A stretch of 64,000 nucleotides of DNA, from the IMG/VR virus record IMGVR_UViG_3300046808_001241, positions 153,183 to 217,182 of that record; one strand, given 5' to 3'. Below are positions 12,015-63,531 of the stretch, piece by piece. Both the position numbers and the translations under genes were made by a program. Under the pieces are notes generated by a model. That model ran no database searches. It was not told where the DNA came from and saw only the letters and a program-made list of their open reading frames with translations. Position 1 is the stretch's first letter. Each line of letters begins with the position of its first letter.

Positions 12015-13718
12015 ATGTTTACACGCGTATTTGATACAAAGTCTTTTATCGATAAATCCAAACAGAAATTTAGTTCCAAATTTAGTTACGAGGATACGGT
12101 ATATACAAAATCAACAAATAGACTTAACGTAATTTGCAGCATTCACGGCAAAGTCGAAATTCTTCCAGGAGTGCACTTGTCTGGAGCGGGATGCCCGAGC
12201 TGTTCGAGGGCGTTAAATGGCTTGAGTCATAGAATGGACACTGAAACGTTTATTAAAAGAGCTCAAGCTAAACATAATAATTTTTACAATTACGACAAAG
12301 CAACATTTCAAGGTAGTTTAAAAAACCTAATAGTCACTTGTCCTGTGCACGGAGATTTCGCAATTCAAGCAAGTCGACATATAAATAACGGAGCTGGTTG
12401 CTCAAAGTGTGGTTTTATTCGTCGTGTAAAAAAATGCACTACCCCACTCGATGTGTTTTTAGAAAAGACATCCAAAAAACCAAATTTCGAAAATTATGAT
12501 TTCAGTTTAGTTAACTTTAAAAATAAAAAAGAATGGGTTACCGTTATTTGTAAAAAGCACGGAGAGTATAAAACTAAACCTAGATATATTGATAATAGTG
12601 CGTTTTTCGGTTGTAGTCAGTGCAAATGCGAAAGCAGAACTTTCACTACTGATACTTTTATCGAAAAAGCTAAACAAATACATGCCGAAAGATATCTTTA
12701 TGATAGAGTCGAATATAAAGATTCACACACAGAGGTGACACTAATCTGTAAAACTCACGGAGATTATATTTGCAAACCTTATGTACACTTGGCGGGAGGA
12801 GGCTTTTGTCCAAGCTGCACTAACAATGGTGTAAGTTCTTATGAGAGAGAAATAAAATTATTTTTGCAACAAAACGGCATCAGCATAGAATCTTCTTTTA
12901 GAGGATTTGACGGATTGAAGGAAATAGATTTAATTTGTCACAACAAAAAAATAGGAATTGAAGTTAATGGGTTATATTGGCACTGTGACTTATACAAAGA
13001 AAAAAACTTTCATAAACACAAAACGGAAACTTTGTTAAAGCAGGGATATCGACTAATTCATATATTTGAAGACAGCTGGCTTCTCAAAAAAGACGTTTGT
13101 TTGTCAATTTTATTGAATGCGTTTAATAAAACTCCCAATAAAATTTACGCAAGAAAGTGTGAACTAAAACTAATTTCAGATAAAGAGTCAAAACATTTTT
13201 TAAATGCAAACCACGTACAAGGTTCTTGCGTTTCTAAAATAAGATATGGTTTATTCTATAATAACGAGCTTGTATCGGTTATGACCTTCGGCTCTAACAG
13301 AAAAAATTTGGGCAATAAATCAAAACCAAATGAATACGAACTACTAAGGTTTTGTAACAAAACCTACACCAATGTCGTTGGAGGAGCTTCTAAACTGTTT
13401 GCTTCTTTCATCAAACAACACAACCCTCGGAAAATAACAAGCTATTGCAATAGAAGTATCGGAACGGGAAATCTATACAAGCAGCTTGGATTTCAGTTTT
13501 TATACAATACGCCTCCAAACTATTTTTATGTCAGAGGAAGTACAAGATTGCCGAGATTTAAATTTCGAAAAGATGTGTTAATTAAACAAGGACATGATAA
13601 AAACAAAACAGAAGCTTGCATTATGAAGGAATTAGGGTATAATAGAATTTATGACTGTGGAAGCATGAAATTTGAATGGACAAATAATCAATCATTTTCC
13701 GAAGATGACTTGTTTTAA
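12015..13718 (+). CDS. Free-standing Hef-like homing endonuclease (repeated CxxHG/CPxC zinc modules, PD-(D/E)xK/Vsr-like nuclease domain)
   Basis: Four FIxKA..H..Y.Y...C..HG...CPxC repeats; EIDLICHNKKIGIEVNGLYWH; LIHIFEDSW; ELLRFC..VVGGASKLF; lies between nrdB and nrdA. Confidence 0.8.
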   Translation: MFTRVFDTKSFIDKSKQKFSSKFSYEDTVYTKSTNRLNVICSIHGKVEILPGVHLSGAGCPSCSRALNGLSHRMDTETFIKRAQAKHNNFYNYDKATFQGSLKNLIVTCPVHGDFAIQASRHINNGAGCSKCGFIRRVKKCTTPLDVFLEKTSKKPNFENYDFSLVNFKNKKEWVTVICKKHGEYKTKPRYIDNSAFFGCSQCKCESRTFTTDTFIEKAKQIHAERYLYDRVEYKDSHTEVTLICKTHGDYICKPYVHLAGGGFCPSCTNNGVSSYEREIKLFLQQNGISIESSFRGFDGLKEIDLICHNKKIGIEVNGLYWHCDLYKEKNFHKHKTETLLKQGYRLIHIFEDSWLLKKDVCLSILLNAFNKTPNKIYARKCELKLISDKESKHFLNANHVQGSCVSKIRYGLFYNNELVSVMTFGSNRKNLGNKSKPNEYELLRFCNKTYTNVVGGASKLFASFIKQHNPRKITSYCNRSIGTGNLYKQLGFQFLYNTPPNYFYVRGSTRLPRFKFRKDVLIKQGHDKNKTEACIMKELGYNRIYDCGSMKFEWTNNQSFSEDDLF

Positions 13719-19098: not shown

Positions 19099-20913
19099 TT
19101 AACGACTAACTTCTTCCCAATCCATAGAAGCAAGCATTCCCGAACCATTAACAGTATCCGTAGAAGCAACTAAAGTAATTTCATATGGAGTCTTTGTTAA
19201 ATTGTTTCGTTCTAATTGGAATTTGAATAAAGCCTCTTTAAGAATATCTAAGTTTGGAGAGCCTTGGTTAGAAGCATTCAAGAAGCCACTTGCAAGGATT
19301 CTTCCTCCTGCATAGCTTGTTCCGGTTATATTATACTCAACAGCGCTGTCATCCCCAGCATCAACCCAACTTCCTCCGCTTGTAGCACCGCTAGCTTTTA
19401 TTTGCCAATTATAGTTAATGCCATTTCCTGTTCCAAGAATTGACAGAGCGGTAAGAATAACAATGGCATCTAACCTATCAGGAGTTGTTTTTAACTTAAT
19501 TGAAATAATTGGATAATACGTATTTGTTGCTGCAAATGTTCTTGGTGTAGTAATTGGAATGCTGACTGCTTGTTGCAGACCTCTTAGTTCGTAACCGCCT
19601 TCAGAAATTACTGTGGAGCAGACTTGTTTTAGAGTGCGAGAACCAGACGTTGCACCTTTATTAGTAATTTCATATCTTAAAGGTAAGGAAGCAGTTGTAA
19701 TGTATGTAGAAGCAATTAAATTTGCGTGATGGAATGAATGACAGACAACGAATTGACCATTAATAACAAGGCCACATCTTACCGTTCCGACCCCAAGCCA
19801 TTCAATATCCATCCAAAAGATTTGAGCTTTTGTAATGTCAAGCGTGAGACCAGAAGGGCCGTTTCCGTCAAGTTTGTCCCCATTCCATGCAGAAAGAGGA
19901 ACAATTGTTTCAGAGGAAGGAGAGCCATTAACAAGACTTCTTTCAACAAAGCTAATTGTTCCATCATCCAGCTGAATATAAATTCCATTATCTTGGCCAA
20001 AGTAACCAACTCTTTGTCGAAGATTGGTTGCAGAAGGAGCCATGATAAACGTGTTCATGACTTGTAAAGATTTCCCAGCTTGATAGCTAAAGACTTTTGT
20101 TGTTTCCCGGATGACAGAAGAACCAGACAAGTTACTGACTGTCATGTCAATCAATCCTTGATTTTGGTTGAATGAGGTAGAACCCCCGACTGCAGTTAAA
20201 GAAGACCAAAGATTGTTGTCTCGATACCTGTGAGAAGAATCAAACAAGGTTAGAGGACTGGATGTTCTTAGACGACCAAATGCATCAAAGGTTGGAGAGT
20301 GCGCAAAAGTAACAGGAAACCCAACAGAAGGATCAACGGTTGCAGTAATTGGATTTGTTACATTAACATTTAAAGATGACGTTGCAGAAACAACAGTTAC
20401 ATTATTATTGTTGAGATCTTTTAAAGCAATTGAGTTAAGAACATTAACTCCAGTCGTTGGATTAGTAACGGTAATAGAACCAGAGACTCCAACAGTATTA
20501 GAAATATTAACAGCAGTTACTGGAGCAACTTCAAAGACTCTTAGAGCACTCAGAGTTTTATTGACTGCTGCAAAGTTCCCAGCTTTGTCCCCAATTGTTA
20601 TGTCATCAACAGAAGATTCTAAGTCCTGAGTAAGAACCTTGAGAGCATTTCCTTCTGAACCTCCTAATTGAACGATGGTAGCTCGAATTGTATGATTGAC
20701 TCCATCTGTTAGTTCTACTGCTCCAATGTTAATATCCGAAGCACTTAAAGAGATTGAAAGATCGCTTAAGTTTGTAATATAACCAGCACGAGCAAATAAA
20801 GGTCTATTGGCATCGTTTTCAACAGGAACCCAAGAAAATGTTTCGGCCATTCCAACATTATATGAAGGAGGTTGACCAGGAGTGCCAGTAAGTTTTGGAG
20901 TAAGAGTAGCCAT
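19099..20913 (-). CDS. Large putative virion protein (DAFGRLR family)
   Basis: 604 aa; FDAFGRLRTSSPLTLFDSS motif common in aquatic phage structural regions; GATAAGTA upstream. Confidence 0.7.
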   Translation of the reverse strand: MATLTPKLTGTPGQPPSYNVGMAETFSWVPVENDANRPLFARAGYITNLSDLSISLSASDINIGAVELTDGVNHTIRATIVQLGGSEGNALKVLTQDLESSVDDITIGDKAGNFAAVNKTLSALRVFEVAPVTAVNISNTVGVSGSITVTNPTTGVNVLNSIALKDLNNNNVTVVSATSSLNVNVTNPITATVDPSVGFPVTFAHSPTFDAFGRLRTSSPLTLFDSSHRYRDNNLWSSLTAVGGSTSFNQNQGLIDMTVSNLSGSSVIRETTKVFSYQAGKSLQVMNTFIMAPSATNLRQRVGYFGQDNGIYIQLDDGTISFVERSLVNGSPSSETIVPLSAWNGDKLDGNGPSGLTLDITKAQIFWMDIEWLGVGTVRCGLVINGQFVVCHSFHHANLIASTYITTASLPLRYEITNKGATSGSRTLKQVCSTVISEGGYELRGLQQAVSIPITTPRTFAATNTYYPIISIKLKTTPDRLDAIVILTALSILGTGNGINYNWQIKASGATSGGSWVDAGDDSAVEYNITGTSYAGGRILASGFLNASNQGSPNLDILKEALFKFQLERNNLTKTPYEITLVASTDTVNGSGMLASMDWEEVSR

Positions 20914-20930
20914 TTAGGCTTACTTATCGC

Positions 20931-21137
20931 TTAAACTTCTTTTGCCCAACTGCGCGGAGTCATTTCAAATCCAAGATCTTTAATGGTTTTGTTGGTATTT
21001 CCGCTCAATTCAATTTGATATGTTTCAACTGGAGCTTGGCAAGTGTTTGCAGCAGTTTCGTCAGTATAGACATTGCAAATAGCAAAGTCAAAACCTTTTT
21101 CAGGATCAATATTAATTATGTCGATTCGATGTAGCAT
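20931..21137 (-). CDS. Small hypothetical protein
   Basis: 68 aa with TAAATA 5 nt upstream. Confidence 0.65.
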   Translation of the reverse strand: MLHRIDIINIDPEKGFDFAICNVYTDETAANTCQAPVETYQIELSGNTNKTIKDLGFEMTPRSWAKEV

Positions 21138-21152
21138 AATGTTATTTAGTAT

Positions 21153-22529
21153 TTAAAATTTATTATTAAACGGAGAAGTAACAAAATTCATATCAAGAGA
21201 AACCGTGTCATATGTATTTGTTGGATCGTAGATGCGGGCGGTTGTGCTGTCATGTGGAACGCAAAATACTTTTCCGTTTTGCATGAGTACTGCACCAAAT
21301 CCTGACCCTCCTCCAGTAAAAACTGCACTTGAAGTGATTAAAGTATCCGATACAGGATCGTATATCTTGGCATTTGTTGTAGATGCGTAGGATAAAGGTG
21401 GAATGAACACTTTTCCATTAGGAAGAATAACTCCACCAGCAGCAAACAAACCTCCTGGATATGTTCCGCTTGGTACAGTAGTTGTATCCGTTATAGGATC
21501 ATAAATCCTAGCAGTAGTGTTAGAAGCAGGAACGCAAAAAACTTTTCCGTTAGGTAATAGAACTGCTCCTAGAGAAGAACTGCTTGATGCAAATGTTCCG
21601 CTTGGAGTAGTTAAGGTGTCTGTAACAGGATCATAAATTCTTGCAGTAGGACCATCTTCAGGATTGCAAAATACTCTACCGTCTGAAAGAAGTACTGCTC
21701 CCGAAAAAGAATATGCTGGAAACGTTCCACCCGCAATAGTTGATGAATTTGTTGACGGATTATAAATTACAGATGGTCCAGAAGTACCCATGTGTCTTAG
21801 ACAATAAACTCTACCGTCTGGAAGTAATACTCCTCCATAATAATTATCAGGAAAACTTCCACCAGCAATACTTACGGTATCTGTAGTGGGATTGTATATT
21901 CTAGGACTATTACCTTGATTTGGGATACAAAATACTCTTCCATCTGGAAGCAAAACTCCCCCATTCGAAAAATAACCTCCTGGATACGTTCCGTTCGGAA
22001 CGGTTGTAGTATTGGTTATTGGATCATATATTCTAGCTGTAGTGCTAAAGCAAGGAACACAAAACACTCTTCCGTCTCGCATTAGAACTCCTCCAATAAA
22101 AGCGGACCCACCCGGAAAGGTCCCATTTGGAGTAGTCAATCGATCCCCAACAATCACATCGTTATTCCTAATAGTATCTAACAAGGCAGCTCTATAATTG
22201 ACCCATCCAGACCCAATTTGATTATTTGTAGCGCTTGTTTGAGGAGTTGAGTTCCAAGTTGGAAATGGTCTTGCTCCTCCCCATTGCGTCCCATTGAATG
22301 TCATCATCTGACCAGAAGAAGCTCCAGAAACGCTAACAACTGCTGATAAGACTTTTGAAGTGCTTTGATAAGTCAAATCAATATTAGCAGAATCAACAAT
22401 ATTTAAACTTCCTCCAGTAGCAGATAAGCTTAAAAGGTTTGCAGAAAGTGTTTGGAAAGCTCCATTGAGATATTCAAGAGAGTCCCCAATACATTGATCT
22501 TCAGAAATTGGAATGCCAGCGAGTGTCAT
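21153..22529 (-). CDS. Kelch-like beta-propeller virion protein, paralog 1
   Basis: ~7 repeats GGVLLPDGRVFCVP...ARIYDP; N-terminal CIGDSL anchor. Confidence 0.8.
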   Translation of the reverse strand: MTLAGIPISEDQCIGDSLEYLNGAFQTLSANLLSLSATGGSLNIVDSANIDLTYQSTSKVLSAVVSVSGASSGQMMTFNGTQWGGARPFPTWNSTPQTSATNNQIGSGWVNYRAALLDTIRNNDVIVGDRLTTPNGTFPGGSAFIGGVLMRDGRVFCVPCFSTTARIYDPITNTTTVPNGTYPGGYFSNGGVLLPDGRVFCIPNQGNSPRIYNPTTDTVSIAGGSFPDNYYGGVLLPDGRVYCLRHMGTSGPSVIYNPSTNSSTIAGGTFPAYSFSGAVLLSDGRVFCNPEDGPTARIYDPVTDTLTTPSGTFASSSSSLGAVLLPNGKVFCVPASNTTARIYDPITDTTTVPSGTYPGGLFAAGGVILPNGKVFIPPLSYASTTNAKIYDPVSDTLITSSAVFTGGGSGFGAVLMQNGKVFCVPHDSTTARIYDPTNTYDTVSLDMNFVTSPFNNKF

Positions 22530-22537
22530 GTTAGTAT

Positions 22538-23917
22538 TTATGAGCCAAAGTTTACATATGGACTAGTAACAAAATTCATATCAAGAGAAACTGATTGATA
22601 CGTCGAAGTTGGATCGTAAATTCTTGCTGTAGTACCGTTGTGCACAAACACTTTTCCGTTTTGCATTAAAGTTAATCCACCATATGATACAGAGCTCATT
22701 CCTATATCTACTGAGCGACTCGTATCTGTCAATGGATCGTAAATGTGAGCGCCACCACCAAATCCAACTATTAATACTTTTCCGTTTGGAAGAACACAGG
22801 CATCTCCAGAACCAAAATTAGAGCCCCCACTTGGTGTAGATACTGTATTGGTTATTGGATCATATATTCTTGCTGGAGCTGGGCTTGTATCACTCGCTGT
22901 AGTATAACTAGTGCAAAAAACTTTTCCGTTTGGAAGTAAAACCACCTTTGACGTAAATTGAGGCAGCCCTCCAACGGTTGTAGTCGTTAATGTAGTGACA
23001 GGGTCATATATTCTTGCTGTACCGTCACCTGCAAAAATAGGCACAAATATTTTTCCGTCAGGAAGAAGTGTAGCTGATTGAGCATATGCTCCTCCGGAAA
23101 CGTAGGCATAAATTGGCGTAGCAGGCACGAAAACAGTTCCTGTAACAGGATCCCAAATATGTGCATAGCCACTATAACCCGGAATAGTAAATATTTTTCC
23201 ACTAGGTAAAACTATAGCAACTACTCCTTGACTCGTTAACCCAGACCAAGATCCAGAATTTGTAACTGTTTCGGTTACATAATCCCAAATAGCTGCTTGA
23301 GGAGCTGTATGTGGATTTACAAATACTCTTCCGTCTGGAAGCAAACAAGCTCCAATATATTCCGGACCTCCAAACGTTCCACCTGGAACTGTAATGGCAT
23401 TTGTAGAAGGATTATAAATACGAGCTGTAGTTGTATTTACTGGAGGTAAAAATACTCTTCCGTCTTTAAGTAGAATTCCTCTAGACCATAATCCATTTAT
23501 TGTTCCGCTTGGAGTAGTCAATCTATCCCCAACAATGTCCCTATTATTCCTAATAACATCAGTCAGAGCTCTTTGATAATTTAAAAATCCGCTATTGCCA
23601 ATTTGGTTATTAACAGCGCTTGTTTGAGGAGTTGAGTTCCATGTCGGAAATGATCTTGCTCCAACAAATGCTGACAAAGTGCTGCTATAAGTCATTCTTT
23701 GACCGTCTTGAGCAGTCAGTGCTAAAGTTGCTGTCAAGGTCTTTGTTGAAGAATTATAATCCAAATCAATAGTTGAAGAATCTTTGGCAGACAACGCATT
23801 AAAGCTTGCAGAAACGCTATAAACGTTTGTAGAAAGAGTTTGAAAAGCGCTATTAATATATTGAAGAGAATCGCTTATGCACTGATCTTCTGAAATTGGA
23901 ATGCCATTAAGAACCAT
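22538..23917 (-). CDS. Kelch-like beta-propeller virion protein, paralog 2
   Basis: Same architecture; shared PTWNSTP and LDMNFVTSP segments. Confidence 0.8.
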   Translation of the reverse strand: MVLNGIPISEDQCISDSLQYINSAFQTLSTNVYSVSASFNALSAKDSSTIDLDYNSSTKTLTATLALTAQDGQRMTYSSTLSAFVGARSFPTWNSTPQTSAVNNQIGNSGFLNYQRALTDVIRNNRDIVGDRLTTPSGTINGLWSRGILLKDGRVFLPPVNTTTARIYNPSTNAITVPGGTFGGPEYIGACLLPDGRVFVNPHTAPQAAIWDYVTETVTNSGSWSGLTSQGVVAIVLPSGKIFTIPGYSGYAHIWDPVTGTVFVPATPIYAYVSGGAYAQSATLLPDGKIFVPIFAGDGTARIYDPVTTLTTTTVGGLPQFTSKVVLLPNGKVFCTSYTTASDTSPAPARIYDPITNTVSTPSGGSNFGSGDACVLPNGKVLIVGFGGGAHIYDPLTDTSRSVDIGMSSVSYGGLTLMQNGKVFVHNGTTARIYDPTSTYQSVSLDMNFVTSPYVNFGS

Positions 23918-23921
23918 AATG

Positions 23922-25310
23922 TTAGTATTTATTTACGAATGGGCTTGTTACAAAATTCGTATCAAGAGTAATTGGTTGATAAGAATCTGTTGGATCATAG
24001 ATGCGGGCGGTTGTGCTGTCGCAAGGCACTAAAAACACTTTTCCGTTAGGAAGGAGAACACCTCCAAAAAAAGGAAAACCAAGAGGATAATTCCCACTCG
24101 GCGTAGTCAATGTATCGGTAACAGGATCATATATTTTCGCTGTTGTGTTATTATTATTCGGAATACAAAATACTTTTCCGTTTGGAAGAAGAACTCCTCC
24201 AAAAAAAGATCCAGAATACGTTCCAGCAGGTATTGTCAATGTGTCTGTTACTGGATCATAAATACGAGCGGTTGTAGAGGTATTTGGAACACAAAATACT
24301 TTTCCGTTTGGAAGAAGAACGCCTCCTGCAAAAGCTCCTGCTGTAGGATACGTTCCTGTAGGGGTCGTTAATGTGTCTGTTGCTGGATTGTAAATACGAG
24401 CAGTTGCAGAGTTGTGTGGAACAGAAAAAACTCTACCGTCACCAAGAAGAACGCCTCCTATAAAAGCAAAAGTTCCTGTAGGATATGTTACTGTAGGGAT
24501 CGTTAATGTGTCTGTTGCTGGATTGTAAATACGGGCAGTTGTGGATTGATTAGCTGGAAGACAAAATACTCTACCGTCACCAAGAAGAACACCACCCCTA
24601 AAGGCTCCACCTCCAGGATATGATCCTGTTGGAGTTGATACAGTATTTGTTATTGGATCATAAATACGAGCGGTAGTGCTATAATATGGTACACAAAAAA
24701 CTTTTCCGTTTGGAAGAAGAACGCCTCCTGCAAAGGCATAATTTCCAGGATATGATCCTAATGGAGTTGATACAGTATCTGTTATTGGATCATAAATGCG
24801 AGCGGTTGTAGAGTTGCTCGGTACACAAAATACTTTTCCGTCTGGAAGAATAACTCCTCCTTCAAACGCCTCGCTTCCCGTGTAAGTCCCATTTGGAGTA
24901 GTCAACCTATCTCCACTAATGTCCCTATTATTCCTAATAACATCAGTAAGTGCTCTTTGCCAGTTTGCAAAGCCATTAATAGATGTTCCACTTAATTGCA
25001 AATTTTGAGCACTTGTTGCGGGAGTCGAGTTCCATGTTGGAAAAGGTCTTTGATCAACCCACTTTTGCTGGACTGCATCATAAGTCAAAGTTTCACCAGC
25101 AGAAGCAGGTACAGAAATTGTTGCAGAAAGAACTTTCGATGAGCTGTTATAAAATAGAGCAACTTGGTCATTGCTTAGCACATTTAAATTTGCAGCTCCT
25201 AATGAAATTCCTTTAACATTTGCCGAGAGGGACAAAAAAGCATTGTTGATTGTGTCTAATGAATCTCCAATACAATCATTTTCGGAGATAGGAATGCCGG
25301 ACAAAACCAT
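23922..25310 (-). CDS. Kelch-like beta-propeller virion protein, paralog 3
   Basis: Most regular repeats; near-identical ~129-bp DNA units around 24360-24600. Confidence 0.8.
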   Translation of the reverse strand: MVLSGIPISENDCIGDSLDTINNAFLSLSANVKGISLGAANLNVLSNDQVALFYNSSSKVLSATISVPASAGETLTYDAVQQKWVDQRPFPTWNSTPATSAQNLQLSGTSINGFANWQRALTDVIRNNRDISGDRLTTPNGTYTGSEAFEGGVILPDGKVFCVPSNSTTARIYDPITDTVSTPLGSYPGNYAFAGGVLLPNGKVFCVPYYSTTARIYDPITNTVSTPTGSYPGGGAFRGGVLLGDGRVFCLPANQSTTARIYNPATDTLTIPTVTYPTGTFAFIGGVLLGDGRVFSVPHNSATARIYNPATDTLTTPTGTYPTAGAFAGGVLLPNGKVFCVPNTSTTARIYDPVTDTLTIPAGTYSGSFFGGVLLPNGKVFCIPNNNNTTAKIYDPVTDTLTTPSGNYPLGFPFFGGVLLPNGKVFLVPCDSTTARIYDPTDSYQPITLDTNFVTSPFVNKY

Positions 25311-25318
25311 GTGTATAT

Positions 25319-27307
25319 TTATTGGTTAAAATCCGTTTTCCAACCAAGTACATGAATTGGAATTAACATTTCGTCATTTGTTGCAGCTAGTGAACCTTCT
25401 GCTAAACTATTTCCTGGACGCTTAACAAAGAATCTTACTATTTGACCTTCTTTGTTTCCTTTAAAATCTGTAGAAAGAGATGCAAAAGTTGTATAATTTA
25501 TAATTCCATACTGAGCTGGATAAGCCGAAACTCTAACAACTTCGGTATTTGCAAAATCAAAATTATAATCAGTTCCTTGAGAAACTAATTTACCACCAAA
25601 ATCCCATGAAACACTAGAAAGAGGAACTGTAGAAATACCACCTTCAACATCGCTGATCATTGCAAGATTGTATCTAAAATTGTTATTAACTTTTGAGAAA
25701 TTACCTCCAACAAGAACTGAATTTTGATACTTCGTCAATGAACTATTGATTAAAGAAGGACCGTTCTGAATAGTTGGCTTCCAGTAAACATATTCCCCAG
25801 TTGATGTATCAGAAGTAAAGCTAGTCTTTTTAACAGAGCAGAGATAACTTTGGTGCTCGTCATTAATTCTTGTGAATCTTCCGTAGCAATAGATTTCAGA
25901 ATTCGTGTCTTGATCTTGAGTTACGAAAGAAGTTACAGGACCATTAAACTTTGGTTTCCAAACTGGTTGAATTAACAATGAATTAGTTTGAATCTTATAA
26001 GAGACTGCATTGTAGTAAACTGTCTGTGCTCCATTATCCCTTGGATTTGAGTTAAATTCAGAATCTGTAAAGCATCTGGAAAATTCACCACCAACATAAA
26101 GATAGATTGAACCACCATCAGACGTTGTATCATCCACAGTTAGAGTGTAAACTGGACCATTAATAATTGGCTTCCAAGCAGCAAGTCTAACACCATTTTC
26201 GTCAATACAGCAAAGATTTTGACATGTTAGTGTTGTATTGGTGTTAATTTTAAACTGACCTCCGACAAAAATCTTTGTTCCAGAGTATGCAATAGAATTG
26301 ATCGTACAAGGACCAGAGAAAATTGAAGAAATGTCAGATAACGAAGCTATTGGGTTTGATACAACAGTTGTTAAATCAATTCTGAATAACCCATTGGAAG
26401 TTAATCTAAGTCCAGAAACAACAGAAGCACTTTGTGTTCCATAGTTAACATAGTCAAAAGCTCCTCCAACAAACAAGTAATTTCCAATAATTTGTACAGA
26501 GTTTACAGAGCCGTTAACATAAAATGGATAAGAGACTCCTGTGCTCTTATTATAGAGACAAAGACCTCTTCCTTTAAAGCCTCCTTGGAATGAACCGCCA
26601 ACGATTAAGAAAGTAGAATTAGAAGCAATTGTATCAACAGAACCCAGAGGACCTAAGTCACCTCCAGTTGAGAATGGATTAGAAATATACGAACCAGTAG
26701 CTGATAAAAGAGGCTCCACTGCTCCAGCACTCAAGCTGATGACGCCAAATTTTCTTGAAACCGTTCCTCCAATTTCTAAAAATTCCCCACCAACATAAAG
26801 ATCTGTTCCATCAACAAGTAAACTATTAACTGTATTATCAAACCAGATTGGACCTCTGGAAGAAACGGAAGAAGCACTATTCAAAGCATAGACTGTCATT
26901 CCATCAACTCCGGAAGCAGTCCACAGAAGGGTTACTTGAGGAATTCGATCGGTCAAGCAAATTGTAGAAAATGTTGCAAGAGGCTTTGGATCGGATGTTG
27001 AACTAACATATGGGAACGTCGTAACTTTTACAGAAGTTCCGTCAAGAAGAGAAATTGTAGAAGGAGAAGCAATAGAGGTTGATTCAAAATCCGTTTGCCA
27101 AGTAAAAGAATTCTTAGTAGAGATTTGAACTTCGTGTCTTTGTTGTTCCGTAATAGACTCTTCGATCATCGTTCCCAATCCAGCAATAACAGAAGGAACT
27201 TCACACAAGCCTTGATCAAGAGCAGAAAAATTAGTATTAAATGTTACTAAAGAATCTCCAATGCATTGATTGGCTCCAACTTGTTGTGTAAAATTACAAA
27301 CTGACAT
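25319..27307 (-). CDS. Beta-propeller (delta-60/Rax2-like LYVGGEF repeats) virion protein
   Basis: LYVGGEF/VGGSF repeats; N-terminal CIGDSL..FN.NF. Confidence 0.7.
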   Translation of the reverse strand: MSVCNFTQQVGANQCIGDSLVTFNTNFSALDQGLCEVPSVIAGLGTMIEESITEQQRHEVQISTKNSFTWQTDFESTSIASPSTISLLDGTSVKVTTFPYVSSTSDPKPLATFSTICLTDRIPQVTLLWTASGVDGMTVYALNSASSVSSRGPIWFDNTVNSLLVDGTDLYVGGEFLEIGGTVSRKFGVISLSAGAVEPLLSATGSYISNPFSTGGDLGPLGSVDTIASNSTFLIVGGSFQGGFKGRGLCLYNKSTGVSYPFYVNGSVNSVQIIGNYLFVGGAFDYVNYGTQSASVVSGLRLTSNGLFRIDLTTVVSNPIASLSDISSIFSGPCTINSIAYSGTKIFVGGQFKINTNTTLTCQNLCCIDENGVRLAAWKPIINGPVYTLTVDDTTSDGGSIYLYVGGEFSRCFTDSEFNSNPRDNGAQTVYYNAVSYKIQTNSLLIQPVWKPKFNGPVTSFVTQDQDTNSEIYCYGRFTRINDEHQSYLCSVKKTSFTSDTSTGEYVYWKPTIQNGPSLINSSLTKYQNSVLVGGNFSKVNNNFRYNLAMISDVEGGISTVPLSSVSWDFGGKLVSQGTDYNFDFANTEVVRVSAYPAQYGIINYTTFASLSTDFKGNKEGQIVRFFVKRPGNSLAEGSLAATNDEMLIPIHVLGWKTDFNQ

Positions 27308-59928: not shown

Positions 59929-60744
59929 TTAGTAAAGGTTCCACTTATTGTTGAGGTATAATTCAACTCCTTGTCGTTGGGATGTCGTTAATACCGAGTT
60001 GTAGATAATCACCTCTGCAATATCTCCATTTAGGTAATCTGGGGCGTAGGTGTCGCCGCCGAGGGAGGTCACGGCTGAGTTGGTGTCTGGAGTGCTCCCG
60101 GCAGTCTGGAATCCCCCCACTCGATCTGTTCCCGCTCCGTTTTTGTACGCAGTAAGAGCAGCGGATCCGTAGTTGTGAACTGATCCAGCAAGCACCCATT
60201 CGTTGGTAGACATGCTCGCAGCTTTCACAAATTGGTATCCATTACTATCAAGGCGACGGCCACCGGCTTCTATGGTGGTGGTCAGGTAGATTGTGGCGCG
60301 TGTAGTGTTGGATAACCCACCTATGCTGTTATGAATAATAGCTTGAGAACCAGATAATGCTTTTGCAGTTTTGCAAACAGCGAACATTGTTAGGCCGGTT
60401 GTGTTGCGTACAATCGGACTGGACGAAAGAGTCAAGATGTCGTTTGATCCGTCGAATCTTAAAACGTTTTTGCCGTTTTTAATCCCGGTTTTTAAAATCG
60501 GCCTTGCATTGGCAGTGTCTTGCGTTAAGTGACGAGCGTTTCCGGATTTATCTTCAATCCGAGCCACAGCAGATCCATCAGTAGTAACTAATGATCCTCC
60601 AACAGTAGAATCATAAAGCGTATTAGAATCTGCAGCATCCAACCAAAGCTGCAGCCCTGAAATGTCTGAAGGCGTTTGCGGACCAGTATCGAATATAGTT
60701 TTGCCTTGAATGTTTGTTTTACCGAGTAGTTTAATTAGTGACAT
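59929..60744 (-). CDS. Cassette 3 gene A, LamG/concanavalin-like domain protein
   Basis: LQLWLDAAD, LRFDGSND, YLNGDIAEVIIYNSVL...VELYLNNKW; first 21 aa shared with cassettes 1/2. Confidence 0.8.
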   Translation of the reverse strand: MSLIKLLGKTNIQGKTIFDTGPQTPSDISGLQLWLDAADSNTLYDSTVGGSLVTTDGSAVARIEDKSGNARHLTQDTANARPILKTGIKNGKNVLRFDGSNDILTLSSSPIVRNTTGLTMFAVCKTAKALSGSQAIIHNSIGGLSNTTRATIYLTTTIEAGGRRLDSNGYQFVKAASMSTNEWVLAGSVHNYGSAALTAYKNGAGTDRVGGFQTAGSTPDTNSAVTSLGGDTYAPDYLNGDIAEVIIYNSVLTTSQRQGVELYLNNKWNLY

Positions 60745-61103
60745 ATGTGCCTTTTATTTATCCAATTCATTTTTTTTTTGCCTATGAATAAAGAAAAATT
60801 TATAAGACCAACCCATAAAATAATACACGAGAATTTTAAACGATTTCCCGTAGCTAGAATAATAATAAAATAATATCAAAAATAGTAATATAATCTCCAG
60901 AGCAGAGCCCAATTAGCTAAAAATTAATAAAAATTCCCCTGATAACCTTACAGAAATATATTACCAGAATTTTTCCGTAGAAATTTAATAAGTTCTCGAC
61001 GCTAGAAAAGATAAAAAAATAATAACAAAATTGTCCAATAAATTCCGCTTAGCAAATAAAAGAATACTTGTCCTGTCCAATGCTTCAGGAGAGACTAATA
61101 AAG

Positions 61104-62166: not shown

Positions 62167-62324
62167 TCACTATTCTTTACTTCATTTGGATTGCATATAC
62201 AGTAACTTCTCTCTCTGTAATTCTTGGGCTGGTTTTTCTCTCGATTCTTGCAAAGGCTGAGAAGAAAAAGAATGATCTAAGGATTCGAGAAATGCTTACA
62301 AAGAGACCGACTGATTCAGAATAG
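62163..62324 (+). CDS. Small membrane protein (not in track)
   Basis: MITILYFIWIAYTVTSLSVILGLVFLSILAKAEKKK..., ATGA overlap. Confidence 0.6.
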   Translation: MITILYFIWIAYTVTSLSVILGLVFLSILAKAEKKKNDLRIREMLTKRPTDSE

Positions 62325-62336
62325 ATTCTCTCTCTC

Positions 62337-62410
62337 GCAGTATTAGTTTAATGGTAGAACGGAGCTCTTCCAAAGCCCAGACGAGAGTTCGATTCTCTCA
62401 TGCTGCACCA
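62337..62410 (+). tRNA. tRNA-Gly(TCC)
   Basis: GCAGTAT/ATGCTGC acceptor stem, D arm GTTT..GAAC, loop CTTCCAA, T arm GAGAG-TTCGATT-CTCTC, encoded CCA; one A-C mismatch in the anticodon stem. Confidence 0.92.
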
Positions 62411-62554
62411 TTCTCTACCAGAACATTTTCTCTCCCTTCTCTCTACACTCTTCTCTCCCGAAGGACAGATCAACAGTTTACACAGCTCTTGATTCTCAAT
62501 ACTTTACATCAGTTCTAACAAAAAGAACAACAACAAGTTACAAACTGTCCCAAT

Positions 62555-63175
62555 TCTTATAAAGCTTTTCAAATCAACAAGTAACGTAAACCCTTTAAAG
62601 CCAACGAGCTACACAAGATAAAATCTATATACCCCTGAGTAACAAACCTTGAAAGAGATTGATCTCTCGTTAGCCCTGTCCTTGTTTTTGGTCATCCGAG
62701 GCTCGCTGACCTTTTCCGAATATGATTCTATCTTCAGAGCTTTGGTTGGACAAGTCACCAAGAATTTTGGGGCCTTTAAGTCTCACTCAATGACTTTTTC
62801 GGTTAGGTGGCGCTGTGGACATAATCCCCCCGTGGACCCTTTTGAAAGGGTTGGGAGGATTATTTGACACTTCAATACTTTTCGTATGAGTCTGTATGCC
62901 GCGTAAGGTCTTTCGACCGTAGTTCTTCAGATTACTTCTAATCAACGACTCTGGTTCCTATATCATCGATTCGAACTACTCCCCACATTCGGAACGGGTT
63001 TTCATTCATTCAGATTTGGTTAGCTAGCAGTCCACTCCTACACTCCAGACAAGAGCTTATAGTGGATGTTGTTTAACGAGTGACGTTCTCATTGAGTCCT
63101 TTGACTCGAACCAAACTATTCGTTGATGGTCGTCCTAACTCGCTTCAACCATTACAGTTAAAGCTTTATGTTCAT
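62555..63175 (-). ncRNA. Large structured ncRNA candidate (ROOL/GOLLD-like)
   Basis: No credible ORF; GATAAATA promoter at 63180-63187; 10-bp end-to-end helix 63160-63169/62559-62568; many hairpins including GGUC-GAAA-GACC; next to a tRNA. Confidence 0.65.
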
Positions 63176-63239
63176 ATTTTATTTATCTATTTCCTTGAAA
63201 TTTTTTTGAATTATTGTATGTTTTGTATAAATAATTTTT

Positions 63240-63311
63240 GCTCCAGTACAGAGATTATTCTTTAAACTCGCTTTAAGGCTTTATGTTCACCCTCTGTACT
63301 GGAGCTTTTTT
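63240..63311 (+). ncRNA. Candidate hairpin small RNA B (antisense to large ncRNA 5' end)
   Basis: TATAAATA 63226-63233, GCTCCAGTACAGAG/CTCTGTACTGGAGC 14-bp stem, 38-nt loop, T6; loop 63274-63289 matches 63159-63174 at 15/16. Confidence 0.7.
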
Positions 63312-63327
63312 AATAATTAAATTTCCA

Positions 63328-63531
63328 ATGAATTACAATTTTGAAGTCAAAATAAGAAACAACGAGCCGATCGACAGAGCACTGAAAGTATTAAAAGGCA
63401 AGCTTGAATCAGATGGCCTCTTTGATGTAGTCCGTTCGAAGAGATCGTTTGAGACTCCGACCCAAAAGAAGAAGAGGAAACTCAAAGCTGCCCACAAGAA
63501 GGCCAAGCAGGCCAGATCTCGCAGAGACTAG
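63328..63531 (+). CDS. rpsU: Ribosomal protein bS21
   Basis: EVKIRNNEPIDRALKVLK...RSFETPTQKKKRK; start reassigned to MNYNF, 8 nt after AATAATTA. Confidence 0.88.
   Translation: MNYNFEVKIRNNEPIDRALKVLKGKLESDGLFDVVRSKRSFETPTQKKKRKLKAAHKKAKQARSRRD

Follow-up and report, generated by a model that had tools for sequence, protein, structure and literature searches.

What is encoded in the gene-free gap next to the ribosomal protein S21 gene of a freshwater jumbo phage, and why should such a gap be conserved at all? We addressed this question in a window of 64,000 nucleotides (positions 153,183 to 217,182 of IMG/VR record IMGVR_UViG_3300046808_001241; coordinates below are those of the window). The original prediction, made from the sequence alone, was of an ornate non-coding RNA of about 620 nt on the minus strand, closed by one terminal helix, tentatively ROOL-like, lying next to a tRNA and facing a dedicated antisense RNA. 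In brief, we find that the gap encodes an intricately folded non-coding RNA of a family not in Rfam, and that its first bases are matched, with co-evolution across relatives, by the loop of a hairpin at the predicted start of the S21 transcript on the other strand.

Sequence features of the gap

Every element that had been listed for this region is present, and the observation itself is therefore confirmed. The motif GATAAATA lies at 63187-63180 on the minus strand, a 10/10 inverted repeat lies at 62559-62568 and 63160-63169, and a stem with an inner hairpin lies at 62821-62863. GGUC-GAAA-GACC is found at 62907-62918, GAGUC-AAAG-GACUC at 63094-63107, UCCACU/AGUGGA at 63031-63066 and GAGAU/AUCUC at 62655-62668, while a 6-codon AUG..UAA minigene occupies 63175-63158. 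No ORF longer than 72 aa exists on either strand between tRNA-Gly(UCC) (62337-62410, plus strand) and the S21 (bS21) gene (63328-63531, plus strand; 67 aa; Pfam PF01165, E 1.9e-16), homologues of which occur in freshwater metagenomes at 65-91% identity. Single-sequence folding is only modestly better than chance, with z of -2.3 for the minus strand against -0.8 to -1.1 for the plus strand, and the evidence that the fold is more than chance comes from relatives.

A conserved minus-strand RNA fold

Homologous loci on freshwater metagenome contigs, found through S21 and neighbouring-gene homologues, fall into four sequence lineages (A to D). In six helices examined across them, 18 of 29 base pairs change on both sides and 113 of 116 cells are canonical. 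In controls in which pairing partners were slid along the alignment, one set of helices had 97.5% of cells paired against 29-49% when slid, with 9 double-change pairs against 0-2, and the other, the P2 domain, had 90% against 25-33%, with 5 against 0-1. Independent minimum-energy folds of lineages B, C and D recover the same P1, P2, P2a, P3, P4, P8 and P9. All 7 wobble pairs in the six helices are G.U on the minus strand, none of the 3 non-canonical cells would be G.U on the plus strand, and RNAalifold energies favour the minus strand in three alignments; the promoter motif, too, is on the minus strand. An important caveat is that there are only four independent lineages (five distinct sequences), so there is no R-scape-grade statistic.

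The structured core, which we call RNA-1, covers about 405 nt (about 63174 to 62770, minus strand), although its 3' end is not defined. The segment 62770-63189 is 100% identical in populations whose flanks differ by 6-12%. RNA-1 lies behind the promoter-like motif GATAAATA (63180-63187, minus strand), which has the T4-type late promoter form NATAAATA, and its predicted start is at about 63174-63175 (A/UGAACAU). GATAAATAAAATA is conserved in lineages A-D and in the related locus L266, and the same motif sits 6-12 nt upstream of several ORF starts in the window, although its enrichment is only 15 occurrences against 8.2 expected (4 of 100 shuffles).

From its 5' end, RNA-1 begins with P1 (63142-63164), the hairpin GCUUUAACU/GGUUGAAGC, whose 3' strand overlaps the P2 5' strand by 3 nt in this lineage; a hairpin at this place is found independently in the minimum-energy folds of all four lineages, each with a different sequence. 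The P2 domain (63075-63144) pairs 63138-63144 with 63075-63081 (P2) and 63131-63133 with 63083-63085 (P2a), and encloses P3 and P4; here CGAG/CUCG changes to CAAG/CUUG, and ACG/CGU to CUG/CAG to CCG/CGG. P4 (63094-63107), GAGUC-AAAG-GACUC, is replaced in relatives by UGAC-GAAG-GUCA, UGGU-GAAG-ACCA and UCGAC-GAAG-GUUGA, with a U-A to U.G change in locus L103. The P5/6 hairpin UCCACU...AGUGGA (63031-63066) has counterparts GUCAGC/GCUGAC in lineages B and C and UCAGU/ACUGA in D.

The core at 62919-62995 is predicted to be pseudoknotted: the invariant GUUCC (62991-62995) can pair with GGAAC (62954-62958), crossing P8, which pairs GUAGUUC (62973-62979) with GAACUAC (62919-62925) and encloses the hairpin GAUUA-GAAG-UAAUC (62930-62943). 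P8 has 4 pairs with changes on both sides and the enclosed hairpin has 3, and the wobble pairs in P8 fit the minus strand only, whereas the GUUCC/GGAAC pairing never varies and so is untested by covariation. P9 (62907-62918), GGUC-GAAA-GACC with a GNRA loop, becomes GGU-GCAA-ACC in lineages B and C and GAU-UAUCA-AUC in D. Finally, P11 (62821-62863) is a stem AAUCCUCCC/GGGGGGAUU with an inner hairpin ACCCUUU-CAAA-AGGGU; the outer stem is kept as AACUCA/UGAGUU in lineage C and ACUCA/UGAGU in B, while the inner hairpin is not conserved, a reading taken from the alignment without a control.

A hairpin complementary to the 5' end of RNA-1

Back to back with the RNA-1 promoter-like motif, a second one, TATAAATA (63226-63233, plus strand), points towards S21. 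[G/T]ATAAATA sits 4-6 nt before a leader hairpin in lineages A-D, and CATAAATA does so in L096, a fifth relative. The leader hairpin (63240-63311, plus strand) consists of a perfect 14-bp stem (63240-63253 with 63292-63305), a 38-nt loop (63254-63291) and U6 (63306-63311), and its stem changes by compensation in 5 lineages. The loop carries 63265-63289, a condensed copy of 63137-63174, which on the plus strand is antisense to RNA-1 nt 1-17 and 28-37. This complementarity is kept in all four lineages although the sequences differ: loop-target duplexes are -28 to -32 kcal/mol within a lineage, -9 to -22 across lineages and -10 to -13 for shuffles, of which 0 of 1000 were as good. In L096, where RNA-1 is replaced by an HNH gene, the loop instead matches the start-codon region of the HNH endonuclease mRNA, at -19.6 kcal/mol against -9.9 +/- 2.7 for shuffles (1 of 1000). 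While these data are what one would expect of a maintained antisense pair, the loop/5'-end repeat could in principle be kept alike by gene conversion rather than by selection for pairing. The large loop also makes the hairpin an atypical terminator, and a terminator scan did not call it.

Two separable modules and a mosaic neighbourhood

Downstream of RNA-1 lies a second module of about 300 nt, RNA-2 (about 62718 to 62420, minus strand), which occurs independently of RNA-1. It is preceded by a sigma-70-like promoter-like element, TTGTCC-N17-TAGAAT (62725-62753, minus strand), in which TGTCCA and GA..ATA are invariant in 10 relatives. By our reading of the alignment, the same unit precedes a different downstream module, an 84-aa ORF, in L103 and L097, and, also by eye, L097 and L260 carry a terminator-like hairpin plus U6 just upstream of it. 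RNA-2 contains the hairpin GGUCA...UGACC (about 62675-62696), the GAGAU/AUCUC hairpin (62655-62668) and one arm of the inverted repeat (62559-62568), and ends in a purine-rich GAGAGAA-repeat tail (62420-62457). Its segment 62427-62613 is 90-95% identical in six relatives, against 74-92% for the adjacent coding genes. The first hairpin changes by compensation (GGUCC/GGACC, AGCCC/GGGCU), while its other helices are weak and did not hold up. RNA-2 occurs without RNA-1 in L096, L097, L257-L265 and L266, directly abutting S21 in L266, whereas RNA-1 occurs with a different downstream module in L103; lineages A, B and C all carry both modules in the same order.

The tRNA-Gly is an insertion specific to this phage. 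It is absent from L096, L097 and L257-L265, which carry a terminator-like hairpin (AAATCGCC-TA-GGCGATTT) flanked by T-runs on both strands, and from two DNA sequencing runs representing other populations, X5 and X9 (joint 62333->62428). The main tRNA island of the genome lies about 20-27 kb into the record.

Searches for related RNAs

The match to ROOL and GOLLD had been named beforehand as a test. Rfam 15 at the gathering score, and at E<=10 over 62300-63500, gave only tRNA and chance hits (a "mir-785" hit is the leader hairpin), and no ROOL (RF03087), GOLLD (RF01998), OLE (RF01071), HEARO, raiA or group I intron (RF00028) model matched there, or at E<=1 in the related loci L095, L111, L108, L266, L097 and L103. 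BLAST of the region against 50,697 phage records gave no match, and BLAST against 35 related IMG/VR records, found through a structural protein, gave only chance hits. A covariance model of the core found one copy in the phage's own genome, with no further copy there and nothing significant in the 35 relatives. Exact-pattern scans of IMG/VR (four), GTDB genomes (one) and JGI metagenomes (one, with a pattern that was too short) gave only chance hits and no true homologue; BLAST found nothing beyond the pattern in the earlier loci so selected, and the covariance model nothing in the later ones. S21 loci in the more distant relatives G006, G008 and G010 have dense coding next to S21, and a 900-nt gap between two tRNAs in G008 reads, by inspection of its translation, as a likely coding (HNH-like) gene.

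A coding explanation was rejected, since tblastn of the relatives' inserted ORFs against the window found no decayed copy and indels between lineages are not in threes. The minigene is not supported either: lineages B and D have other short ORFs there and lineage C has no AUG. Whole-genome GC skew and gene orientation give no sign that the locus is an origin or a strand switch. The one metatranscriptome, a small run consisting of contigs only and without strand information, holds low, even coverage across the whole 5.5 kb and thus provides no transcript evidence. The one structural protein that we compared is most like those of T4-like cyanomyoviruses; the PVC host that had been suggested is an inference from sequence alone.

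Interpretation

The interpretation originally offered is thus partly supported: a structured minus-strand RNA starting just after GATAAATA, and a dedicated antisense element covering its 5' end, hold up, while ROOL/GOLLD membership, a single closed RNA and the significance of the tRNA neighbourhood do not find support. The explanation that we favour, with moderate confidence, is that the gap holds two minus-strand non-coding RNA modules and one plus-strand antisense element. In this view, RNA-1 is transcribed leftward from a T4-type late-promoter motif and folds into a 5' hairpin, a three-branch P2 domain, several hairpins with GNRA or GAAG loops, and an H-type pseudoknot around an invariant ACCGUUCCGA...UAGGAAC core, while the second late-promoter motif would start the S21 transcript exactly at the base of the leader hairpin. 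The loop is complementary to the first ~17 nt of RNA-1 and to the 5' strand of its P2 helix, the two segments that flank RNA-1's 5' hairpin. The two divergent late transcripts may therefore pair in trans, which would either block closure of P2, and hence affect folding or stability of RNA-1, or, because a ~20-30-bp duplex inside the loop is incompatible with closing the stem, relieve termination at the U-run and so couple S21 expression to RNA-1. RNA-2 would be a separate conserved unit with its own promoter-like element. Our analysis demonstrates the conserved fold, its strand and the co-evolving complementarity; that both RNAs are made, where the transcripts end, that they pair in the cell and what such pairing does are inferences, and a scaffold or S21/ribosome-related role for RNA-1 is a guess.

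Several alternatives deserve consideration, though we regard each as unlikely. A single RNA of ~620-760 nt spanning both modules and closed by the 10-bp helix AUAAAGCUUU/AAAGCUUUAU (63160-63169/62559-62568) is the least improbable of them: the helix is perfect in the window, the whole-region minimum-energy fold uses it, and we found no terminator between RNA-1 and RNA-2 in the window. However, such a helix alone is near chance expectation for an AT-rich 630-nt stretch and has no comparative support, its arm sequence is itself a palindrome, most relatives read AAAGCCUUAU at the 3' arm, which would give an A.C mismatch, and the only full-length relative, L111, offers only 5 bp at the aligned place. 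Moreover, its arms lie in modules that occur separately, with a conserved promoter-like unit, and in L097 and L260 a terminator-like hairpin, between them. It is also improbable that RNA-1 is a long structured 5' leader of minus-strand mobile genes, repressed by the antisense hairpin, with the window having simply lost the ORF. While in L103 RNA-1 is followed on the same strand by an 84-aa ORF, in L096 the loop masks the HNH start codon, and RNA-1 begins with AUGAAC in lineages A, B and D, the ORF in L103 is preceded by its own promoter-like unit, lineages A, B and C have no minus-strand ORF downstream of RNA-1, and the fold is conserved irrespective of what follows.

Even less likely is the absence of any functional RNA, with conservation reflecting DNA-level signals (promoters, terminators, repeated protein-binding sites or a recombination hot spot for mobile ORFs) and recent exchange between phages. 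The region is indeed strongly mosaic, with HNH, 84-aa, 82-aa and 70-aa ORFs and a tRNA that come and go, TTCTCTC repeats cluster here, and the 100% identity could come from a recent sweep; but DNA signals do not predict compensatory changes in nine helices, a pseudoknot helix that changes on both sides at four positions, or the one-sided G.U asymmetry. A divergent member of ROOL or GOLLD, suggested by the large ornate RNA, its presence in a phage from lake metagenomes, the neighbouring tRNA and an HNH gene in the region in one relative, is very unlikely given the absence of any model match at E<=10 over 62300-63500 or at E<=1 in the six related loci, including to the universally conserved 3' region that the GOLLD model captures, and of the tRNA-Gly from relatives. 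A group-I-like reading of the pseudoknot order was likewise dropped, as there is no P4-P6 domain between the strands, no model hit and no exons, the element being intergenic and on the strand opposite to its neighbours.

Relation to known systems

ROOL and GOLLD are described as phage or prophage RNAs of unknown function near tRNA islands, and they share with RNA-1 a length of several hundred nucleotides, many helices, a pseudoknot (predicted here) and no known protein partner; GOLLD expression rises late in infection, and here the promoter motif is of the late type. ROOL is described as forming a homo-octameric, RNA-only nanocage. RNA-1, however, has a shorter core (~405 nt), lies away from the main tRNA island of the genome, although a tRNA-Gly adjoins the region in this phage, and has a dedicated antisense partner, which to our knowledge has not been described for ROOL or GOLLD. 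OLE RNA is a large structured RNA functionally tied to bS21, which it binds at a stem that mimics the Shine-Dalgarno/anti-Shine-Dalgarno duplex. Here the RNA is the divergent neighbour of a phage S21 gene and one stem in the window reads AAUCCUCCC/GGGGGGAUU, but this CCUCC-containing stem exists only in lineage A and is not conserved in B and C, OLE occurs in Bacillota with Oap proteins, and the link to S21 here is by position and RNA-RNA complementarity. In antisense systems such as ColE1 RNA I/RNA II, R1 CopA/CopT, and pT181 and pIP501 attenuation, a short stem-loop RNA likewise has a loop complementary to the 5' part of a longer RNA, and pairing changes target folding or terminator choice; those antisense RNAs are cis-encoded and fully overlap their target, whereas here the two genes do not overlap and the complementarity is a separately maintained, condensed copy that skips the target's 5' hairpin. 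The CfrI antisense RNA of cyanophage S-PM2, a T4-like aquatic myovirus, links psbA to a homing endonuclease gene, which recalls L096, but CfrI is a cis-antisense transcript.

A more speculative possibility, which we consider unlikely but cannot exclude, is that RNA-1 is the founding member of a new class of large structured phage RNAs that works with the phage's own S21. Its 5' end would act in trans on the S21 leader hairpin as an RNA anti-terminator, or the hairpin RNA would gate RNA-1 folding, and the mature RNA, perhaps with RNA-2's purine-rich, Shine-Dalgarno-like tail, would bind S21 or 30S subunits during late infection, as OLE RNA binds bS21. That would be an RNA-RNA-protein module for taking over translation.

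Large ornate phage RNAs such as ROOL and GOLLD are among the best-known bacterial-world RNAs without a function, and a further, unrelated family would add to that group, in this case one offering two experimental handles: a co-evolving antisense partner and a fixed link to a phage-encoded ribosomal protein. The non-overlapping but co-evolving complementarity between two divergent, putatively late transcripts is unusual, and it retargets to an endonuclease mRNA when the neighbour changes, making it a regulatory design that is directly testable in vitro. Given that bS21 was recently shown to be a component of the OLE RNA complex, a second association between a large RNA and S21, this time in a virus, would bear on why phages carry S21 at all.

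Genomic setting and search for known families

The window is the last 64 kb of a 217,182-bp virus record with 127-bp terminal repeats. The record is a jumbo myovirus which encodes a T4-type baseplate wedge protein and a ribonucleotide reductase, and one of its virion proteins is 65-68% identical to those of T4-like cyanomyoviruses; just upstream of the gene for the large subunit of the reductase lies a 567-aa ORF (12015-13718) that matches HNH/homing-endonuclease families. The sequencing runs that hold the sequence are freshwater or lake metagenomes. The region of interest is a 917-bp stretch with no ORF above 72 aa, located between tRNA-Gly(UCC) (62337-62410, plus strand) and a 67-aa ribosomal protein S21 gene (63328-63531, plus strand; PF01165, E 1.9e-16). 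While all flanking genes are on the plus strand, within the gap the purine-rich strand is the minus strand, and G+C rises to 0.42-0.47 against 0.30 in ordinary spacers.

The original prediction described a series of stems, the GATAAATA motif, a 10-bp terminal inverted repeat and a minigene in this gap, and all of these are present where they had been placed; the observation is thus confirmed. Folding energy of the single sequence is nevertheless weak evidence for a structured RNA, with z of -2.3 for the minus strand and -0.8 to -1.1 for the plus strand. In a search of Rfam 15 at gathering scores only the tRNA was found, and a permissive search of 62300-63500 at E<=10 gave only chance hits, one of which ('mir-785') is the hairpin before S21. 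Six related loci searched at E<=1 also gave nothing. As models for ROOL, GOLLD, OLE, HEARO and introns are all in that library, membership of each of these families was tested, and in each case the result was negative. The main tRNA island of the phage (13 tRNAs) lies outside the window, at 19632-27047 of its record (G000:C1), and includes an ARAGORN 'tmRNA' call at 24603-25036 with an odd 33-residue tag, which may be a false call or another structured RNA.

A mosaic region with two separable modules

DNA searches of phage GenBank records, searches of 35 IMG/VR relatives, and pattern scans of IMG/VR, JGI metagenomes and GTDB genomes all failed to return relatives of the region. Relatives were instead found through proteins: S21 homologues of 65-91% identity and homologues of the 71-aa upstream ORF led to about 35 short metagenome contigs (referred to below by L numbers), which show that the region is a mosaic. 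Its right part (about 62770-63174; RNA-1) exists in four sequence lineages, namely A (the window, L103 and L104), B (L094 and L095), C (L111 and L112) and D (L106-L108, which hold only the first 270 nt). Its left part (about 62420-62760) follows the 53-aa ORF in L096, L097 and L257-L265 at 90-95% identity, which is higher than the 74-92% of the neighbouring coding genes, and occurs there without the right part; in L266 it abuts S21 directly. In L103, on the other hand, the right part is followed by a different module, an 84-aa minus-strand ORF.

Other inserts come and go. In L096 a 293-aa HNH endonuclease gene on the minus strand (L096 1866-2860) replaces RNA-1, and its last 8 codons lie in a 37-nt stretch identical to window 62775-62811; the same contig carries 70-aa and 82-aa ORFs. 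In lineage B an 82-aa lysine/glutamate-rich plus-strand ORF (L094 80-328; L095 258-506) is inserted inside the RNA-1 region and antisense to it, between the conserved linker (window ~62799) and the stem P11, and no decayed copy of it was found in the window. The 84-aa minus-strand ORF belongs to a portable module (L097 1624-2237; L098 1-252; L103 1-294) in which, as read from the alignment, it lies behind the same TGTCCA-N17-GATAAT unit that precedes the left part, and which contains a remnant resembling one arm of the S21-leader hairpin (GCTCCGGTACAGACGG). The tRNA-Gly(UCC) at 62337-62410 is itself an insertion and a presence/absence polymorphism: relatives and other populations, two lake populations among them, carry in its place a terminator-like hairpin (AAATCGCC-TA-GGCGATTT) flanked by T-runs on both strands.

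RNA-1 has a conserved fold on the minus strand

We aligned the four lineages from the conserved GATAAATAAAATA motif. Independent minimum-energy folds of B, C and D give the same architecture, consisting of a 5' hairpin (P1), a closing helix P2 with an inner helix P2a and two hairpins (P3, P4), a further hairpin (P5/6), a long helix P8 that encloses a small hairpin, and a terminal GNRA hairpin (P9). Base by base, six helices give 29 pairs, of which 18 change on both sides among just four lineages, and 113 of 116 cells are canonical. For example, P4 reads GAGUC/GACUC, UGAC/GUCA, UGGU/ACCA and UCGAC/GUUGA, while P8 reads GUAGUUC/GAACUAC, CGUUACUC/GAGUAGCG and CGUUGUGC/GCACGACG. When cells were counted against controls in which partners were slid, the 3' half of the core had 97.5% of cells paired against 29-49%, with nine pairs changing on both sides against 0-2, and P2 and P2a had 90% against 25-33%, with 5 pairs against 0-1. 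P8 crosses a potential pairing of two invariant pentamers (GUUCC/GGAAC), giving a predicted H-type pseudoknot, though because the pentamers never vary this second helix draws no support from covariation. In lineage A the bases after the P8 5' strand (62966-62977) read GUUCGAAUC, the tRNA T-loop consensus, and a repeat search paired this stretch with the T arm of the neighbouring tRNA-Gly; relatives read CUCAAAUC or UGCAAAUC.

The folded strand is the minus strand. All seven wobble pairs in these helices are G.U on that strand and would be A.C mismatches on the plus strand, and none goes the other way; L103 adds a U-A to U.G change in P4. RNAalifold energies favour the minus strand in three alignments, and the promoter-like motif is on that strand as well. 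In two lake populations 62770-63189 is identical to the window, while the flanks differ by 6-12%.

RNA-2

The left block, which we refer to as RNA-2, is preceded by a conserved TTGTCC-N17-TAGAAT unit. By our reading of the alignments, the same unit precedes the 84-aa ORF module in L103 and L097, and in L097 and L260 a terminator-like hairpin plus U6 lies just upstream of it. RNA-2 thus looks like a separate minus-strand unit of about 300 nt that ends, in relatives, at the terminator-like hairpin found at the tRNA site. One of its hairpins changes by compensation (GGUCA/UGACC, GGUCC/GGACC, AGCCC/GGGCU), whereas the other proposed helices are weak. Its 3' end is a purine-rich tract of GAGAGAA repeats. 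Seven of the window's 18 copies of TTCTCTC (GAGAGAA on the minus strand) lie within the 250 nt of 62207-62457, all on the plus strand, and by our count about ten variants of the motif (mostly GTTCTCTC-like) lie in L266 (1480-1830) between its 57-aa ORF and S21. The motif could be an iteron-like DNA site or a purine-rich, Shine-Dalgarno-like RNA tail.

Back-to-back promoter motifs and a proposed antisense partner

[G/T]ATAAATA is the form of T4-type late promoters. In the window it occurs 15 times against 8.2 expected, often 6-12 nt before ORF starts, and two copies stand back to back in the gap. The minus-strand copy (63187-63180) would start RNA-1 at about 63174, while the plus-strand copy (63226-63233) would start a transcript at about 63239/63240, the first base of a perfect 14-bp hairpin (63240-63305) which is followed by U6 and, 17 nt later, by the S21 start codon. 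Both motifs and the hairpin are kept in lineages A-D, and the hairpin stems change by compensation. Evidence on expression is limited to one metatranscriptome that holds parts of the region at low depth, no higher than the neighbouring genes, and as unstranded contigs, so that it neither supports nor refutes transcription. In that dataset the highest contig depth (28.5 against 1-7 nearby) belongs, within the stretch 59929-60762, to a minus-strand ORF at 59929-60744 which is a G+C-rich island (0.55 against a genome mean of 0.37), with GATAAATA lying 11 nt upstream of its start.

The loop of the hairpin contains a condensed copy of the beginning of RNA-1, namely its first 15-17 nt joined to the 5' strand of P2 with the P1 hairpin left out, and read on the plus strand it is therefore complementary to the 5' end of RNA-1. 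The four lineages differ strongly in these sequences, yet each loop matches its own RNA-1: duplex energies are -28 to -32 kcal/mol within a lineage and -9 to -22 kcal/mol across lineages, while shuffled targets give -10 to -13 (sd 3), and none of 1000 shuffles is as good. In L096, where the HNH gene replaces RNA-1, the loop is instead complementary to the first bases of the HNH message, including its start codon, with 13 contiguous pairs and -19.6 against -9.9 +/- 2.7 (1 of 1000). So in five sequence contexts the loop tracks the 5' end of whatever is predicted to be transcribed divergently.

Interpretation and relation to known systems

The interpretation offered by the original prediction was only partly supported: a structured minus-strand RNA with an antisense element complementary to its 5' end is upheld, whereas neither the ROOL-like label nor the single-RNA architecture is. 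The proposed terminal helix would join RNA-1 to RNA-2, and while it is perfect in the window, it is a palindrome, would carry an A.C mismatch in most relatives, and has only 5 bp in L111. Given in addition that the two modules occur separately, we consider a single long RNA unlikely. As regards the antisense partner, the way in which the loop follows its target is what selection for RNA-RNA pairing predicts, but gene conversion between the two copies is an alternative that we cannot exclude.

In kind, this is a large structured phage RNA like ROOL and GOLLD, but it is a member of neither. The antisense logic resembles plasmid copy-control pairs, except that here the partners do not overlap. 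The only documented link between a large non-coding RNA and bS21 is OLE RNA, which binds bS21 at a stem mimicking the Shine-Dalgarno/anti-Shine-Dalgarno duplex; the window has a CCUCC-containing stem (P11, 62821-62863), but lineages B and C do not, and the parallel thus remains only a lead. Two papers on phage S21 and on candidate viral structured RNAs do not mention such an element, though it may sit unnamed among published candidate lists.

The conserved fold, its strand and the lineage-specific complementarity are results of the comparison between lineages, whereas transcription from the two motifs, pairing of the RNAs and its consequences are inferred from sequence alone. We are highly confident that RNA-1 is a real minus-strand structured RNA, and regard a functional antisense relation with the S21 leader hairpin as more likely than not. 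The regulatory outcome of that pairing can be proposed only tentatively, and a ribosome- or S21-related role is improbable on present evidence. As for the mechanism, a duplex of 20-30 bp inside a 38-nt loop cannot coexist with closure of the 14-bp stem, and pairing should therefore either keep the terminator-like hairpin from forming, giving more S21 read-through, or sequester the 5' tail and P2 strand of RNA-1 and change its folding or stability. In L096 the same design would block translation of the endonuclease. S21 genes in L266 and L097 lack the hairpin and have the motif about 10 nt before the ATG; the hairpin therefore goes with the presence of an adjacent, predicted divergent late transcript, and not with S21 as such.
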